Sequence record: LR745206.1
Direction: 5' to 3' (one strand)
DNA length: 64,000 bases
Shown here: in pieces, positions 2,327 through 26,724 of the stretch
How the letters are laid out: each line of letters begins with the position of its first letter
Position numbering within the stretch: the first letter of the stretch is position 1
Translations under genes and position numbers: made by a program
Notes under the pieces: generated by a model
Databases searched by the model: none
Told to the model about the DNA's origin: nothing
The model's input: only the letters and a program-made list of their open reading frames with translations

Positions 2327-2883
2327 AACATCTACTAATATTAGATTTGGATGAAGCTTTATGGCACTCTGTTTATAACAGTGAGGTTAGTAAAGAAAGT
2401 TATGATTTTATCAAGAATTCTTTTGATGTTCTTGGTATGTACAGAACTATGCTTCGACCACATCTACAAGAATTTCTTGATTATGCTTTTGAAAATTTTG
2501 ATGTTGCTATTTGGACAGCTGCTGGTAAGGGGTATGCTGAGTTTGTTCTAAATGAAATGAATCTAGATATCACAAAGTTAAAATTCTTTTACACAGAGAA
2601 GAATTGTACACCTAAATATGATTATGGTGAAGGTTGGGGTATGGGTCAAATGGTTTATAAAAAGAGTATCAGTAAGTTAAGTAAAAAGGGTTATGATATG
2701 GATAAAGTGTTGATGGTTGATGATAAACCAGAACACATTGATTCTTATGGGAATGTTATTAAAATAAAAGCTTTTTATGGTGATTCTGATGATACTGAAT
2801 TATTAAAATTGATAAAATATTTGGATAAAATAAAAGATGAACCAAACATTAGAAGTATCGAGAAAAGAGATTGGTCTAATTAA
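2323..2883 (+). CDS. HAD-superfamily NIF/FCP1-like phosphatase
   Basis: LILDLDE, RPHLQEFL, WTAA, MVDDKP motifs. Confidence 0.85.
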   Translation: MKHLLILDLDEALWHSVYNSEVSKESYDFIKNSFDVLGMYRTMLRPHLQEFLDYAFENFDVAIWTAAGKGYAEFVLNEMNLDITKLKFFYTEKNCTPKYDYGEGWGMGQMVYKKSISKLSKKGYDMDKVLMVDDKPEHIDSYGNVIKIKAFYGDSDDTELLKLIKYLDKIKDEPNIRSIEKRDWSN

Positions 2884-2893
2884 TACATATAAA

Positions 2894-3217
2894 ATGAAAA
2901 AAATATTAACAATATTATTGATGTTTTTGTCGAGTTTATTATACTCACAAACTGTTTGTACAGATACTATATTTGCTCCTAACGCCTTTACACCAACATT
3001 AACAACAAATAATAAATTTATACCTTATATAAATTATTATACTGACTATCAGATGGTTATCTATAATAGATGGGGTTATTTAATTTATAGTGGTAAAGAA
3101 TGGGATGGTACATATAAAGGTACTTTGTGCCAACAAACAACATATATCTGGGAAATAAAAGCTTATGGATCAGAATGTGAAAGAAATTTTAGAGGAATGG
3201 TTGTGTTGATTAGGTAA
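2894..3217 (+). CDS. signal peptide plus T9SS type-B (CHU_C / gliding-motility-associated) C-terminal domain
   Basis: MKKILTILLMFLSSLLYSQ then PNAFTP, IYNRWG, WDG, TYxW, FRGMVVLIR. Confidence 0.85.
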   Translation: MKKILTILLMFLSSLLYSQTVCTDTIFAPNAFTPTLTTNNKFIPYINYYTDYQMVIYNRWGYLIYSGKEWDGTYKGTLCQQTTYIWEIKAYGSECERNFRGMVVLIR

Positions 3218-5584: not shown

Positions 5585-6058
5585 ATGACAAGATCACAAT
5601 TAAATAATCTTATTGGATTTACTTTTAATTTTCATGAAAACATGGGAAATAAAGTTCTAGATTGCGATTCTTCTTATTTATTAGAGAAATGGGAGAAATA
5701 TATTGGAGTATCTACAAAAAATAACATATCTTATGATTATTTTTTAGAAAATAAAACATACTTTCATTTGGTTATAAGAAGATGGTTTGGTAAATGGGAT
5801 AAGAATGGTAAAGATTGGGATAATATATTACCAATACTTAATTTTATCAATGAGATTAATCTTTTGGATCCTATGGGTAGATTTAATAATATAATGACAC
5901 CGGATGATTTAATAAAATTATTCAATAAACATATCGGTGATGTCAATGAAATTAATAAATGTGAATATAAACACTTACATGCTAATGTAGTTAAAAGAGT
6001 TGATACTTGGATAAATAAATTAAAAAGAGAATATAATTTAACATTAATATTAGATTAG
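5585..6058 (+). CDS. hypothetical protein
   Basis: ATG5585 after TATATTTG 5571-5578; ends KREYNLTLILD. Confidence 0.65.
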   Translation: MTRSQLNNLIGFTFNFHENMGNKVLDCDSSYLLEKWEKYIGVSTKNNISYDYFLENKTYFHLVIRRWFGKWDKNGKDWDNILPILNFINEINLLDPMGRFNNIMTPDDLIKLFNKHIGDVNEINKCEYKHLHANVVKRVDTWINKLKREYNLTLILD

Positions 6059-6282
6059 TATAAGTCAGAGAAGCTATCGCCGGTCCCGAAAGGGTGAAAT
6101 AACTGGAGAAACTTCGACACTACTGAACCTAACGTGGGAGGCAATCTTCGGATAGCCGTTACTACCACGGAAGTAGCAACACATACAGACCTAGGATATC
6201 GGTTCTCCTTTGATGGTCGGGTTTGTGGCAATAGATAGATGATAGCTTAAAGCAAAATGTCGGGTAAGCTCAACTTATACTA
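6056..6282 (+). ncRNA. rnpB: minimal RNase P RNA (catalytic domain, S-domain largely absent)
   Basis: Hand-folded P1, P2, P3, P4 pseudoknot with bulged U, P5, P6 pseudoknot, P7, P15-P17 with GGU in L15; conserved-region-like GGAGAAACUUCG, UAGAUAGAUG, CAAAAUGUCGGGUA. Confidence 0.88.
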
Positions 6283-6301
6283 ATTTTTTAATAAAAAAGA
6301 T

Positions 6302-6508
6302 ATGAAGAAAGGTGATAAATTAATATGCACTAAAGAAGTTAATAATTTTTTAGGAAACACTCTATTTGAAAAGGATAAAGAATATGATGTTCTTTATGTT
6401 GATAATGAGGATATAGAAGTAATGGTTTGTTTAAATCATGTTTTATATGCTAATGAGTATAATTTATTTCCATTGGAATGGGTATTAAATAATTTCAAAA
6501 AAATATGA
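6302..6508 (+). CDS. hypothetical protein
   Basis: 68-aa ORF in operon. Confidence 0.6.
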   Translation: MKKGDKLICTKEVNNFLGNTLFEKDKEYDVLYVDNEDIEVMVCLNHVLYANEYNLFPLEWVLNNFKKI

Positions 6509-6912
6509 TAAAGGAAAAAATAGAAGAGGTTATTGAAAACCTAATAATAAATACCGAATTGGGAACACTAGTTTGGGAGGAAGGTGATACCAAAGATAGA
6601 AGATATGAGAGGTGTTTAATTTCTTATGGTGAGGATGGTACTCAGTTTGAGATAGAAATAAAATATACTTTAATTAATAACAAATGGAAATTTGATGATT
6701 CTAAGTATATTTGGGTACGTAATAAAAAACTACCAAAGGGACATTATTATGGATCGACCGATTCTGTTATGAAACTTAAAGAGATTTTACTAAAAAAATA
6801 TTGCCAAGATTTAAATCCAAGTGAGAGCGATGTTGCTGATATACTTGGTGAGATATCCAAGGGTATATCATTATCAACATATAGGGATAATAAACTAAAT
6901 AAAATTTTATGA
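6505..6912 (+). CDS. hypothetical protein with C-terminal RxxK motif
   Basis: Ends YRDNKLNKIL. Confidence 0.65.
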   Translation: MIKEKIEEVIENLIINTELGTLVWEEGDTKDRRYERCLISYGEDGTQFEIEIKYTLINNKWKFDDSKYIWVRNKKLPKGHYYGSTDSVMKLKEILLKKYCQDLNPSESDVADILGEISKGISLSTYRDNKLNKIL

Positions 6913-7550
6913 AAAATGCTTGGAAACTATTTGATTATGGTGAGACTCCAATCTATCTAAAATATTGGTTTTTAGGTCTTTTTCTATTCATACCAGTGAG
7001 CTTAGTATTGATGATATTTGTATCTATACTTATACATGAAATGGCTCATGTCCGTACAGCTAGAAAATTAGGATACAATACAGATTATATTTTTATAGAT
7101 ATATTACATGGTGGTGCTTTGGTAGATTCCAAACACGGTGATAACAACAAACACGCTATATCAGTAGCTTTAGCAGGTCCAACATCCAATTTGATATTAG
7201 CATTAATTATAACTTTAGGTACAACAATATTTACATCATTTAGTCCGGATAATATAGATTCACCAATAATTCCATTTTTAGCAGAATTTATCGGTATTAA
7301 TTTAATATTATTTATTGCTAATTTAATACCAATATACCCACTTGATGGTGGTAGGATAAGTAAAGCATTTTCAAAAATGTGTTTTGGTGAAAATAAAGGT
7401 AGAGTTATAAATGGTATAATCTCAATGATTTTATCTTTTTGTGTTTTGAGTTATGGTATAATAAAGGTTGATTTTATATGGATAATATTCTCAGTAATAT
7501 TTATTATAACATCATATGGTGAAATTAAATCAAAAAAAGATGAACTTTGA
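6909..7550 (+). CDS. M50 family site-2 intramembrane metalloprotease
   Basis: HEMAH, LAGP, NLIPIYPLDGGRI, TM helices. Confidence 0.92.
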   Translation: MKNAWKLFDYGETPIYLKYWFLGLFLFIPVSLVLMIFVSILIHEMAHVRTARKLGYNTDYIFIDILHGGALVDSKHGDNNKHAISVALAGPTSNLILALIITLGTTIFTSFSPDNIDSPIIPFLAEFIGINLILFIANLIPIYPLDGGRISKAFSKMCFGENKGRVINGIISMILSFCVLSYGIIKVDFIWIIFSVIFIITSYGEIKSKKDEL

Positions 7551-8258: not shown

Positions 8259-8847
8259 TATGTTTATAATTGACACAAACAAAGAAGATGTATTGAATGA
8301 TTTTCCATTTATACAAGAATGGATAGATACATTACAATTGAACATCATTAAAAAAGAAATTGATGATTCAAAAATTGAATTTTACTACTCTTATGGATTT
8401 TTCGTACCAAAAGTGGATAATAAAGAAGATCTTTATAATGATATGTATGAGAAATGTTCTAAGATGTTATTTGATGATAGATTAACATTTGAGCTATCTA
8501 AAGTAAGAGTAAATCTTACCATGAAGATAGGAAAATTGATATTATCAAATAGATTAGATAAAGGTAATATACCATCTTTATTAAAAAAAATAGTTACTGA
8601 ATTAACTAAGGTTAAAATGACAGTTGAGGCTGAGTATCATGAAAACAAGGATGTAATTGACTCTATTCCGGAGATAGATACTAATATAGTATCATTTGAT
8701 GTTATCAGGGATGTTATATCCAGTGATTACTCAGAATCTCAAAATTTTGATATTGATTCTATTTTAGATAAAATTTCTAAAAAAGGTGTAGAGTCTTTAT
8801 CAGATGAAGAGAAAGAATTCTTGGATAAGAAAAGTAAAGACATTTAA
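8251..8847 (+). CDS. protein with DUF6576-like C-terminus
   Basis: Ends IDSILDKISKKGVESLSDEEKEFL. Confidence 0.65.
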   Translation: MNNMFIIDTNKEDVLNDFPFIQEWIDTLQLNIIKKEIDDSKIEFYYSYGFFVPKVDNKEDLYNDMYEKCSKMLFDDRLTFELSKVRVNLTMKIGKLILSNRLDKGNIPSLLKKIVTELTKVKMTVEAEYHENKDVIDSIPEIDTNIVSFDVIRDVISSDYSESQNFDIDSILDKISKKGVESLSDEEKEFLDKKSKDI

Positions 8848-9665
8848 TGTTAGATTTAAATAAAATATACCAAGGTGATTCATTACAATTATTAAAAGAT
8901 ATGCCGGACAACTCTGTTGATCTGGTAATAACCTCACCTCCATATGCTGATTTGAAAACATATATAGATTTCAAGGGAATATTAGCAGATGATTATGTGG
9001 AATGGTTTCTACCGTATTGTAATGAGATATGTCGAGTTATTAAACCAACTGGTTCATTTATTCTAAATATAAATGATAAGGTTGAAAATAGGTTCAGACA
9101 TCCTTATGTATTTGATTTAATATCTGAGTTACATAAAAGAACAGATCTTAAATTATTTGAGAGACTATTTTGGAATAAAATGAAAGGTTTACCAAATAGG
9201 TATAGATTTGGTGATAGAGTAGAGTATCTATTTTGGTTTGCTAAAGATAAAGAATTCTATTTTAATATAGATGAAATGAGAACCGAGTATGCTGAGAAAT
9301 CCATAAAAAGAATGAAGAAACCTTTGAAGAAGAGGTTTGCTAGAACTGATGGTGATGGTGAAGTAGATTATAAAGACTGGAACCCGAATCCAAAGGGTGC
9401 TTTACCAACCACACTTGTTAATATATCATCCGAGTCCAAAAGGATTGCTGATAATCATGTGGCTGTTTATCCAGTTGAGTTGGTTAAATACTTTATAAAA
9501 GGTTCTTCGAAAGAAGGAGATGTAATTCTAGATCCATTTATGGGTACTGGTACAACTGCTTTAGCAGCAAAGGAGTTGAATAGAAATTATATCGGATTTG
9601 AGCTACAACCTGATTATATAAAAGTTGCTAAGAAAAGAATAGATGATTATGTTAAGAATATCTAA
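8847..9665 (+). CDS. DNA methyltransferase, N4-C/N6-A beta class
   Basis: ITSPPY, HVAVYP, ILDPFMGTGTT. Confidence 0.92.
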   Translation: MLDLNKIYQGDSLQLLKDMPDNSVDLVITSPPYADLKTYIDFKGILADDYVEWFLPYCNEICRVIKPTGSFILNINDKVENRFRHPYVFDLISELHKRTDLKLFERLFWNKMKGLPNRYRFGDRVEYLFWFAKDKEFYFNIDEMRTEYAEKSIKRMKKPLKKRFARTDGDGEVDYKDWNPNPKGALPTTLVNISSESKRIADNHVAVYPVELVKYFIKGSSKEGDVILDPFMGTGTTALAAKELNRNYIGFELQPDYIKVAKKRIDDYVKNI

Positions 9666-26650: not shown

Positions 26651-26724
26651 GGTCTTTTAGCTCAGTCGGTTAGAGCGCCTCGCTCATAACGAGGATGTCG
26701 TAGGTTCGAGCCCTACAAAGACCA
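26651..26724 (+). tRNA. tRNA with CAT anticodon (Ile2 or elongator Met)
   Basis: Cloverleaf GGTCTTT/AAAGACC, CCTCG-CTCATAA-CGAGG, TTCGA loop; G1-C72 so not initiator; followed by CAA rather than CCA. Confidence 0.93.

Follow-up and report, generated by a model that had tools for sequence, protein, structure and literature searches.

The RNA gene and its locus

The window, i.e., the whole stretch of DNA analysed, comprises 64,000 nucleotides of the 634,780-bp phage genome LR745206.1 and contains a gene for a miniature RNase P RNA. The features of the locus, together with a tRNA gene located further downstream, are the following:

5585..6058, + strand: conserved upstream ORF of unknown function, 157 aa from the Met at 5585
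6056..6282, + strand: miniature RNase P RNA gene, 227 nt
26651..26724, + strand: tRNA-Met(CAU), the sole candidate substrate gene inside the window; CCA not encoded

The stretch 6056-6282 is free of genes and stands out as a GC island (0.38-0.40 vs 0.20-0.30). The RNA gene is single copy: the R1 search scores 277 bits at 6056..6282 and detects no second copy in the rest of the LR745206.1 genome. The upstream ORF ends with a UAG stop codon that also supplies the first three bases of the RNA, and the RNA begins at the ORF's stop codon in several lineages. In the window clade and in the L025, L026 and L009 lineages, and in no others, this ORF immediately precedes the RNA. It has no Pfam match and its AF2 model is too weak for use (pLDDT 59). 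The ORF (ORF169) was considered as a possible dedicated protein partner of the RNA and rejected as an obligatory one, since distant relatives (L010-L012) occur without the RNA; the different neighbours found in L029, L137, L063 and further lineages also disfavour it.

A 58-codon minus-strand ORF at 6055-6231 was dismissed, since the substitutions follow base-pair compensation and not codon conservation. MFE folding (z -0.82 for the + strand and -2.03 for the - strand) is uninformative because the RNA is pseudoknotted, and was left out of the evidence. A scan of the locus for sigma-70 promoters and intrinsic terminators gave no enrichment; Bacteroidota promoters are outside the coverage of the tool.

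LR745206.1 carries 59 tRNA genes, with 27 spacers of 3-10 nt, and only about 2 of the 59 encode CCA. The nearest tRNA array is placed some 80 kb or more from the RNA gene. In the L137/L128/L134 lineages the RNA gene is located between tRNA-Thr and tRNA-Gly, the latter beginning 2 nt past the RNA, and in L088, L104, L099 and L073 same-strand tRNA arrays are found 1-3 kb from it.

Secondary structure of the RNA

The helices and conserved elements of the RNA, all on the + strand, are listed below by position in the window:

6056..6070: P1 5' strand; 6056-6065 pairs with 6273-6282, and GAG 6068-6070 with CUC 6269-6271
6071..6078: P2 5' strand, pairs with 6241-6248
6080..6106: P3; 6080-84/6102-06 (CCGGU/ACUGG) and 6085-87/6092-94 (CCC/GGG), GAAA loop
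6106..6119: CR-I and P4 5' strand, GAGAAACU[U]CGACA; 6111-6113 and 6115-6119 pair with 6258-6265, U6114 bulged
6120..6123: P5 5' strand, pairs with 6173-6176
6125..6129: P6 pseudoknot 5' strand, GAACC, pairs with GGUUC 6201-6205
6133..6169: remnant specificity module (P7, GA(G), UUCG-loop hairpin and conserved loop)
6133-37/6165-69: P7, CGUGG/CCACG
6140-6157: S-hairpin with UUCG loop, preceded by GA(G)
6158-6164: conserved loop GUUACUA; family consensus G-N-U-N-N-N-A, U and A invariant
6177 (start): J5/15, CAA; AAC 6178-6180 invariant
6180-82/6225-27: P15, CAC/GUG
6188-91/6215-18: P16, GACC/GGUC
6193-96/6206-09: P17, AGGA/UCCU
6220-6222: L15 GGU, conserved in 16/16/15 of 16 lineage representatives
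6228..6240: J15/2 block, (G)CAAUAGAUAGAU, with the highest conservation in the family
6249..6272: CR-V and P4 3' strand, AAAGCAAAA, then UGUCGGGU (6258-6265), then UAAG and CUC

The initial annotation had quoted these helix strands from the sequence alone. All of them are present at the coordinates it gave and the assignments held, except for the register of the bulge in P4: the bulged U exists, and it is the second U (U6114) instead of U6113. With the bulge set at U6114, the alignment column 89-338 reads CG12/UG6/UA2/GC1, and the bulged base is invariant in 21/21 sequences.

The retained parts correspond to the type-A catalytic domain: P1-P5, P15-P17, the P4/P6 pseudoknots, the bulged U, J5/15, L15 GGU, J15/2 and CR-V. 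The 3' strand of P6 (6201-6205) is formed by the final 5 nt of the 9-nt P17 loop. P18 is absent between P15 and P2, and in place of the specificity domain (S-domain) there are only P7, one hairpin and a short conserved loop. The inner AUC/GAU of P2 and the following G and C (6076-6080) are invariant, whereas P3 is variable across the family, with CAC-UACG-GUG only in L025/L029 and a 15-nt insertion in L018. G6106, A6107, A6110, A6111, U6114 and C6115 are invariant or almost so. Among the 16 lineage representatives, CAAUAGA, A6237, A6239 and U6240 of J15/2 are invariant, and the conserved bases of the CR-V region are C6253, A6254, A6256, A6257, G6262 and A6266. The remnant of the specificity module is enlarged in L070, L066, L099, L104 and L026. 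Its G-N-U-N-N-N-A loop could possibly be a single T-loop-like or G.A element, an inference that makes the earlier statement that the RNA has no T-loops too strong.

Distribution of the family

The family comprises 22 distinct intact sequences of 203-263 nt (the 21 of alignment A5 plus that of LR756511.1), found in about 39 phage contigs of 10-642 kb. The same reduced architecture is found across about a dozen lineages, with only 31-38% identity between their flanking proteins. Broken copies also exist, L024 being truncated by an internal deletion and L026/L027 being chimeric; the gene can therefore be lost or broken.

A two-block pattern that finds four of the phage lineages gave 8 matches in cellular genomes, none of them real, and 28 matches in metagenome contigs, five of them real and none from a new lineage. 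The exact 16-mer GGAGAAACTTCGACAC has seven matches in IMG/VR, all by chance. A blastn search of GenBank phages with the window RNA retrieved only the RNA itself, and the same search with four divergent family members retrieved nothing for three of them.

Evidence for RNase P identity

The window RNA aligns with the full length of the RNaseP_bact_a model at 21.3 bits (E 7.7e-05, 451-nt search). The homologues L009 (32.4 bits, E 4e-07), L086 (48.9 bits, E 9e-13) and L029 (29.7 bits) also match RNase P models, so that end-to-end matches are obtained in four independent lineages, with E from 1e-4 to 1e-12. The scores of 21-49 bits are far under the gathering scores of 84-100, yet every alignment spans the whole model. 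The low scores result from the lack of the S-domain and P18: the positions of P8-P14 and P18 are deleted in every alignment, with P7, one hairpin and a 7-nt loop remaining.

The blocks GA..AA..[U]C, AAC, CAAUAGA.A.AUGAU and CA.AA are invariant in 15-16 of the 16 lineage representatives and align with the same blocks of RF00010 and RF00373. In particular, the J15/2 block aligns with J18/2 ('uAGAugAAUG') of the Rfam model, and the CR-V stretch with 'ACAGAAC.CCGGCUUA' of RF00010. The invariant bases, i.e., those of CR-I, J5/15, L15 GGU, J15/2 and CR-V, coincide with the universal RNase P core.

Covariation was evaluated in the 21 aligned sequences of A5, LR756511.1 being left out. The proportion of paired cells is 94.7%, compared with 31-40% when the partners are slid; doubly changed cells number 319 vs 14-45, and the covariation score is 0.587 vs 0.03-0.08. 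The observed values are reached in none of 500 shuffles. Compensatory changes occur at 56/68 pairs. In P1 both sides change at 13/13 pairs (95.5% paired), in P5 compensation is observed at 4/4 pairs (100% paired), and P7 and the hairpin are compensated at 4/5 and 4/6 pairs, respectively; P15, P16 and P17 all covary. P4 and P6, which are outside the covariance model, re-pair repeatedly across lineages, around the invariant bulged U. P4 is compensatory at 6/8 pairs (94.6% paired, observed values reached by 0/500 shuffles), and P6 at 4/5 pairs (98.8% paired), with seven distinct sequence pairs among lineages. A lack of P4/P6 covariation among homologues, which would have refuted the initial annotation, is thus not observed.

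The window RNA is a genuine homologue of bacterial-type RNase P RNA. The homology and the conserved structure are shown, and catalysis is inferred from them. The central claim of the initial annotation, a phage RNase P RNA whose catalytic core is complete and whose specificity domain is almost entirely missing, therefore held, on the basis of full-length covariance-model matches in several lineages, covariation that includes P4 and P6, the invariant core and the location within or next to tRNA arrays.

The phage RnpA protein

The genome also encodes a homologue of the bacterial protein subunit:

LR745206.1 76,444-76,752: phage RnpA gene, 103 aa, about 426 kb from the RNA gene

The protein matches Pfam PF00825 at 49.7 bits (cut-off 22.3) and TIGR00188 at 44.3 bits (cut-off 38.35). 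It contains the RNR motif, and AVDRNRIKRLMRE is invariant among 12 relatives. Its AF2 model (pLDDT 85) has the alpha-beta RnpA fold, and the top 16 PDB matches of the model are all RnpA proteins (TM 0.78-0.84, rmsd 1.5-2.0 A). The earlier suggestion that the RNA probably uses the host RnpA hence failed for LR745206.1. RnpA is also encoded in the RNA-bearing LR756502.1 and on a 483-kb IMG/VR contig that carries the RNA, whereas none is detectable by tblastn in LR756511.1, which also bears the RNA. The partnership of RNA and RnpA is inferred from the co-occurrence in three genomes; the genes are not adjacent and there are no association data.

Comparison with known RNase P systems

The phage RNA shares with bacterial type A RNase P RNA (RF00010) the helix order P1-P2-P3-P4-P5-P15-P16-P17, the bulged U of P4, a P6 formed from the P17 loop, L15 GGU, a P2 of 6-8 bp and the CR-I, J5/15, J18/2-like and CR-V sequences, as well as a putative partner, an RnpA with the RNR motif and the RnpA fold. 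On the other hand, it lacks P18 and the P8-P14 specificity domain, including the J11/12-J12/13 T-loop module, it has 203-263 nt vs 367 Rfam model positions, and it is encoded by a phage and not by a cell. Against RF00010, whose gathering score is 100, the phage RNAs reach just 21-49 bits.

Archaeal type T RNA is also natural, and it too combines a retained catalytic domain with the loss of most of the specificity domain, a short terminal stem being left past P7. Type T has a 3-bp P2 and a 2-nt P5/P15 linker (PMC3579882), an archaeal-type C-domain, very high GC and the protein partners Pop5, Rpp30 and Rpp29. In contrast, the phage RNA has a P2 of 6-8 bp, a 3-nt linker (CAA/AAA), about 44% GC and a bacterial RnpA. 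Membership of type T was rejected, as the lengths of P2 and of the linker do not fit. Given the differences in P2, linker, GC and protein partner, the reduction is convergent, and the likeness to the type T S-domain loss pointed out in the initial annotation held as a resemblance only.

Engineered RNAs containing only the C-domain (e.g., Eco CP RPR, PMC5839562) still cleave pre-tRNA, at reduced efficiency, which indicates that the retained parts suffice for the chemistry. Like the phage RNA, such constructs are essentially the catalytic domain alone. They are laboratory truncations, whereas the phage RNAs are natural, under selection, lack P18 and carry a conserved mini-module in place of the S-domain.

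The orthopoxvirus RNase P-like RNA is the sole earlier claim of a virus-encoded RNase P-like RNA in the literature searched. It shows only some secondary-structure similarity and does not cleave pre-tRNA in vitro (PMC3001073). In the phage RNAs, by contrast, the conserved core is complete and the pseudoknots covary; a gene for a putative protein partner is present, and the RNA gene is linked to tRNA arrays. RPM1 of yeast mitochondria is likewise a strongly reduced RNase P RNA, whose gene is placed between tRNA genes and co-transcribed with them; the RNA gene of L137/L128/L134 is likewise flanked by tRNA genes. RPM1 is organellar, has still fewer helices than the phage RNA and works with an unrelated protein subunit.

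The searched full-text literature, which included the huge-phage paper, jumbo-phage reviews and a 2024 RNase P review and excluded subscription-only papers, contains no description of an RNase P RNA or holoenzyme encoded by a phage. Within that literature, a virus-borne miniature RNase P is likely to be undescribed.

Proposed role in phage tRNA maturation

The explanation that best fits the data, and which is considered likely, is that the phage encodes an RNase P holoenzyme for the maturation of its own pre-tRNAs. Homology, conserved structure, the association with tRNA arrays and the co-encoded RnpA are shown. Catalysis, the pairing of the RNA with RnpA and the substrates are inferred, and there are no activity or expression data. 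The poor catalysis of isolated C-domains of bacterial RNase P RNA in vitro (PMC5839562) counts against this explanation. So do the Rfam scores far under gathering, the separate locations of the RNA and rnpA genes, the failure of tblastn to detect an RnpA in LR756511.1, the scarcity of encoded CCA, the distance of the RNA gene from the nearest tRNA array in LR745206.1 and the broken copies L024 and L026/L027.

In the proposed mechanism, which is inferred from homology with the bacterial enzyme, 6056-6282 would provide the RNA component of a bacterial-type RNase P carried by the phage. This RNA would team with the 103-aa RnpA that the phage itself encodes, the catalytic Mg2+ ions would be positioned by P4 and its bulged U, L15 GGU and J5/15 would hold the acceptor end and the -1 nucleotide, and RnpA would bind the short 5' leader. 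The contact between L15 GGU and CCA would need prior CCA addition, because only about 2/59 tRNA genes encode CCA. The enzyme would then cut the 5' leaders from the phage's 59 tRNAs, mostly in arrays with 3-10 nt spacers. In the lineages with the gene inside an array, the 5' cleavage of the downstream tRNA would also generate the 3' end of the ribozyme itself.

A bolder reading can be formulated as one joint claim, towards which the balance of the evidence leans by a small margin: some of the largest phages would carry a self-sufficient two-subunit RNase P, whose RNA (203-263 nt) would be the smallest natural bacterial-type ribozyme, would recognise pre-tRNA without the canonical specificity domain, and would mature the phage's own dense tRNA arrays independently of the host, suppressor or otherwise atypical phage tRNAs included. 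The route of recognition may be the one conserved T-loop-like or G.A loop (G-N-U-N-N-N-A), which is no more than a possibility.

Alternative explanations

The alternative that survives best, and is nevertheless unlikely, is a genuine RNase P ribozyme that acts mainly on substrates other than tRNAs. Polycistronic mRNAs of the phage, host RNAs or tRNA-like elements would be cleaved through a specificity relaxed by the S-domain loss. Almost nothing is left of the S-domain, whose normal task is to check the tRNA elbow, the gene of the window phage adjoins a protein-coding ORF at its 3' end, far from the tRNA arrays, and few LR745206.1 tRNA genes encode CCA. However, in other lineages the gene is within or beside same-strand tRNA arrays, the tRNA-specific contacts L15 GGU and J5/15 AAC are conserved, and 59 phage tRNAs require 5' maturation.

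There is very little support for a catalytically dead decoy that sequesters host RnpA or pre-tRNAs and disturbs host tRNA maturation, as once proposed for the orthopoxvirus RNase P-like RNA. In its favour, that only earlier viral example is inactive in vitro (PMC3001073), and the regions that bind protein and substrate are kept in the phage RNA while the S-domain is lost. Against it, an RnpA encoded by the phage itself is hard to reconcile with a decoy, the residues that serve chemistry alone (the bulged U and the CR-I/CR-V adenines) have stayed invariant across lineages in which the helices are all rewritten, and the gene is placed in tRNA arrays.

A decaying host rnpB fragment, acquired by the phage and persisting as a functionless pseudogene, is also very improbable. 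The internal deletion of L024, the chimeric L026/L027 and a length far below that of any cellular bacterial RNase P RNA would agree with it. On the other hand, the reduced architecture recurs in about a dozen lineages with flanking proteins of 31-38% identity, compensation at 56/68 pairs with 94.7% paired cells indicates purifying selection on the structure, and the pattern that finds four phage lineages finds no copy in cellular genomes.

Finally, a structured RNA unrelated to RNase P and similar to it by chance, for instance a 3' UTR element that regulates the upstream ORF in cis, is suggested by the Rfam scores under gathering and by the start at the ORF stop codon in several lineages, but is all but excluded by the end-to-end RNase P matches of four independent lineages (E 1e-4 to 1e-12), by the two pseudoknots, bulged U and conserved joining regions that all fit RNase P, and by the wholly different neighbours in other lineages.

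Implications for phage biology

RNase P, one of two universal ribozymes, has so far been regarded as a strictly cellular or organellar enzyme. The viruses described here carry the genes of both RNase P subunits, their assembly into a holoenzyme being inferred. Since the current Rfam thresholds miss this miniature class, RNase P is probably under-annotated in viral and other reduced genomes.

The phage RNA represents a natural minimisation experiment that reveals what a bacterial RNase P RNA can dispense with under selection: the S-domain and P18 are lost, and P6, P15-17 and every core joining region are kept. The small RNA, of about 205-230 nt, and its 103-aa putative partner make an attractive compact system for structural studies, for engineering and for examining how substrates are recognised in the absence of the T-loop module. 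If the inferred maturation of phage pre-tRNAs is correct, tRNA 5' maturation would be added to the translation functions of huge phages, next to tRNAs, synthetases and ribosomal proteins.

RNA Locus and Genomic Setting

The sequence at 6056-6282 is a phage RNA whose homology to RNase P RNA and conserved structure are essentially certain. The initial annotation had folded this 227-nt stretch by hand, from sequence alone, as a phage RNase P RNA; its observation is confirmed, since the sequence it quoted is identical to that of the window and every helix lies where it had been drawn. The stretch forms a GC island (0.38-0.40 against a background of 0.20-0.30). The features of the window used here are:

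5549/5585-6058, + strand: upstream ORF, whose stop codon borders the RNA
6158-6164, within the RNA: GUUACUA loop (family consensus G-N-U-N-N-N-A), with U and A invariant in the family
6302 (start), + strand: downstream ORF, the next after the RNA
26651-26724: tRNA-Met, matched by Rfam at the gathering threshold

The UAG stop codon of the upstream ORF (6056-6058) provides the first three nucleotides of P1, and therefore the upstream mRNA may yield the RNA from its 3' end. A U-run (AUUUUUU, 6283-6289) lies 3' of the P1 3' strand. Just downstream are genes for a Peptidase_M50 (site-2 protease-like, 6909-7550) and an N6/N4 DNA methyltransferase (8847-9665), both conserved in related contigs.

The window is a 100% match to LR745206.1, an unannotated 'uncultured phage' record of 634,780 bp. 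This genome ranks among the four largest phage genomes that are complete and circularised, and belongs to the Mahaphage clade, with Bacteroidetes as predicted host (PMC7162821). An ORF a few kb upstream of the RNA (2837-3217) has homologues in four retrieved contigs (L013, L016, L018, L019). When these homologues, and not the window ORF, were scanned, they showed the Bacteroidota-typical CHU_C/T9SS sorting domain (PF13585), which is consistent with the predicted host.

Homologues and Distribution

Homologues of both flanking ORFs (31-35% identity) occur in LR756502.1, another huge phage (642 kb), with a 210-nt RNA immediately 3' of the upstream one. Through metagenomic proteins homologous to the upstream one, 15 more contigs came to light; in each, the RNA occupies a gap of about 245 nt that is free of genes. 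Further copies were recovered from the IMG/VR and JGI metagenomes with a covariance model (R1, built from eight variants and nested helices only) and three degenerate DNA patterns. When a divergent member served as blastn query, it matched LR756511.1 (595 kb) at 92 bits and E 6e-27, which brings the deposited huge phages with the RNA to three. The family comprises 22 distinct intact sequences from about a dozen lineages, on some 39 contigs that range from 1 to 642 kb, many being 150-640 kb long; the GC content of the locus ranges from 0.24 to 0.41. A two-block DNA pattern gave eight matches in 185,579 cellular genomes, all spurious. No second copy was found in the rest of LR745206.1, where two weak R1 matches (L151:22059-22165 and L142:9443-9480, on pieces of this record; 15 bits, E about 0.02) are probably noise.

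Two aberrant copies were observed. The first (L024:506-661, one Logan contig) is a window-type RNA that has lost P5 to part of P17, with point changes in CR-I and J15/2, and is likely a dead derivative. The second is chimeric (L026:742-978, equal to L027:732-968). Its 5' ~190 nt resemble the RNA of contig L025, and after the conserved CAAUAGACAAAUGAU block it switches to the P2/CR-V/P4/P1 3' strand of the L070 type, which cannot pair with the 5' half and is followed by a different gene. The identical sequence occurs in two independent assemblies; a natural recombination at the conserved block and a shared assembly artefact are both possible.

Covariation and the Conserved Core

Covariation was measured on an alignment of 21 family sequences, to which the pseudoknots P4 and P6 were added. 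Standard pairs occupy 94.7% of the cells, against 31-40% when the partners are slid by 1-3 columns; the doubly changed cells number 319 against 14-45, and the covariation score is 0.587 against 0.03-0.08. Changes on both sides occur in 56 of 68 pairs, and none of 500 shuffles matches any observed measure. The nested helices guided the fitting of the alignment, and their counts are therefore biased toward the structure. P4 and P6 lie outside the model and rank among the best supported helices, and both covary across homologues. Compensatory changes affect 6/8 pairs of P4 (94.6% paired), 4/5 of P6 (98.8%) and 4/4 of P5 (100%). P6 is formed by seven different sequence pairs:

GAACC/GGUUC
UUGCU/AGCAA
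CUUCU/AGAAG
UCACG/CGUGA
UAGCU/AGCUA
CAGUU/AGCUG
GACCU/AGGUC

The bulged U of P4 recognized by the initial annotation is invariant (21/21 sequences), but its position is not upheld. A bulge at the second U (6114) is favoured, with the preceding pair being CG in 12 sequences, UG in 6, UA in 2 and GC in 1, and the register, shifted by one, scores 0.702 against 0.621 for that first drawn. Cellular RNase P RNAs have an AAG[U]CC arrangement, with which the U6114 register agrees.

The following blocks, by which the RNase P catalytic core is defined, do not vary in 15-16 of 16 lineage representatives:

P2 end and P3 start: AUCGC
CR-I: GA..AA..[U]C
before the P5 3' strand: GA
J5/15: AAC
L15: GGU
before P2: CAAUAGA.A.AUGAU
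before the P4 3' strand: CA.AA

Relation to Known RNase P RNAs

At gathering thresholds, Rfam gave no match at the RNA, tRNA-Met being its sole match in the window, and the family is absent from Rfam 15. When 5950-6400 was scanned permissively, the bacterial type A model spans the RNA from first to last position (21.3 bits, E 7.7e-05, below the gathering threshold). It matches P1/P2/P3, CR-I, the GCAA linker, CGGGU of L15, the UAGAU..AUG joining region and CR-V, with deletions at the specificity domain (S-domain) and P18. Independently, the LR756502.1 RNA gives an end-to-end RNaseP_arch match (32.4 bits, E 4e-07), and the divergent RNAs of contigs L086 (48.9 bits, E 9e-13) and L029 (29.7 bits) also match Rfam RNase P models by themselves. 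Minimum-free-energy folding of the window RNA was uninformative (z -0.82), which is no surprise for an RNA with two pseudoknots.

The family lacks P18 and P8-P14. Beyond P7 there are only GA(G), one hairpin and the G-N-U-N-N-N-A loop. The hairpin has a UUCG cap in the window RNA and is variable or expanded elsewhere (~60 nt in contig L104). The near-total S-domain loss proposed initially therefore held, with one amendment: the asymmetric loop might, by inference only, be a T-loop-like or G.A-type substitute for the lost tRNA-elbow-binding module. Some members carry additions, namely a GAAA hairpin between P16 and P17 (L063, L064, L071, L129) or a second layer on P7 (L070, L066).

The phage RNA is homologous to bacterial type A RNA, and is inferred to work alike, but without S-domain and P18, and below the Rfam threshold, it does not meet the full type A definition. 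The likeness to archaeal type T suggested by the initial annotation holds for S-domain loss only. The features that define type T, a 3-bp P2 and a 2-nt P5/P15 linker (PMC3579882), are absent, which rules out membership; with the inferred bacterial protein partner as well, the reduction is taken as convergent. Laboratory constructs of the catalytic domain retain cleavage with lower efficiency (PMC5839562). An orthopoxvirus RNase P-like candidate RNA is without activity (PMC3001073), and no other viral RNase P-like RNA was found in the literature searched. Phage-encoded RNase P is unmentioned in the huge-phage paper (PMC7162821), in jumbo-phage reviews and in a 2024 RNase P review, and no report was found in the full-text literature searched.

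The Proposed Protein Subunit

Among the six-frame ORFs of LR745206.1, all searched by profile, one is RnpA-like:

record 76,444-76,752 (L143 26647-26955, on a piece of LR745206.1): phage rnpA

The use of host RnpA, as initially inferred, thus fails for this phage, which encodes its own. The protein scores 49.7 bits against Pfam Ribonuclease_P (cut-off 22.3; profile positions 1-107 of 109) and 44.3 bits against the NCBIfam equivalog TIGR00188 rnpA (cut-off 38.35), and has the RNR motif. An AlphaFold model of it (pLDDT 85) fits experimentally determined RnpA structures at TM 0.78-0.84 and rmsd 1.5-2.0 Å; RnpA accounts for each of the 16 best PDB matches, one of which is the T. maritima holoenzyme-tRNA complex. 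LR756502.1 encodes a homologue (51.6% identity), and one 483-kb IMG/VR contig (L154 and L028) carries both a homologue and the RNA. The metagenomic relatives number 645, of about 100 aa, some on contigs of 100-480 kb. In the loci sampled rnpA never lies beside the RNA gene, and tblastn detected none in the RNA-bearing LR756511.1; some lineages may therefore still rely on host RnpA.

Several GenBank 'phage' records (MG065691.1 and AFYI01000003.1 among them) with 97-99% E. coli/Salmonella-type rnpA were rejected as cases of phage-encoded RnpA, as they seem to be bacterial DNA deposited under a phage label. Next to the phage rnpA are genes that, by eye only, resemble a ClpP-type protease (L143:25319-26059, - strand) and a large TonB-dependent-receptor/SusC-like outer-membrane protein (L143:27654-30302, - strand); if true, these would be unusual phage cargo.

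tRNA Context

On three contigs (L137, L128, L134) the RNA gene lies between tRNA-Thr and tRNA-Gly on the same strand, in an array of 17 tRNAs in 6.4 kb. The tRNA-Gly begins 2 nt beyond the RNA 3' end, so that RNase P cleavage at its 5' end would also trim the ribozyme. Four others (L088, L104, L099, L073) have arrays of 3-14 tRNAs on the strand of the RNA gene, 1-3 kb upstream of it. Of the 59 tRNA genes that LR745206.1 carries, most are packed densely into four same-strand arrays, and 27 of the spacers measure 3-10 nt. Only about 2 of the 59 encode CCA in a crude check, a caveat for the GGU-CCA contact.

Other tRNA-related genes were observed. CUA-anticodon tRNAs (amber suppressors, labelled 'Pyl' by ARAGORN) lie ~5 kb from the RNA in two lineages (L008:10564-10635 and L063:6112-6186), a hint of possible stop-codon recoding in these phages. 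ARAGORN also reported tRNA-like genes with irregular anticodon loops, one being a 4-nt 'gtag', inside phage tRNA arrays (L150:8964-9037, L150:21436-21523 and L134:378-461); they may be frameshift-suppressor-like or mispredictions. The gene just 3' of the RNA on a 508-kb contig (L029:799-1210) is YqeY/GatB-domain-like by eye only; this family is associated with tRNA and translation.

Interpretation

Four alternatives are considered unlikely. An active RNA with mainly non-tRNA substrates has to be set beside the tRNA arrays near the gene in other lineages, a decoy beside the invariant catalytic core, and a pseudogene beside the compensatory changes in the helices. An RNA unrelated to RNase P is dismissed by the homology itself. 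The initial interpretation as a phage RNase P RNA is supported, amended on RnpA, the P4 register and the residual loop. Catalysis and the partnership of the RNA with RnpA are inferred. The best explanation, which is likely, is a phage-encoded RNase P holoenzyme whose miniature RNA would mature the phage pre-tRNAs.
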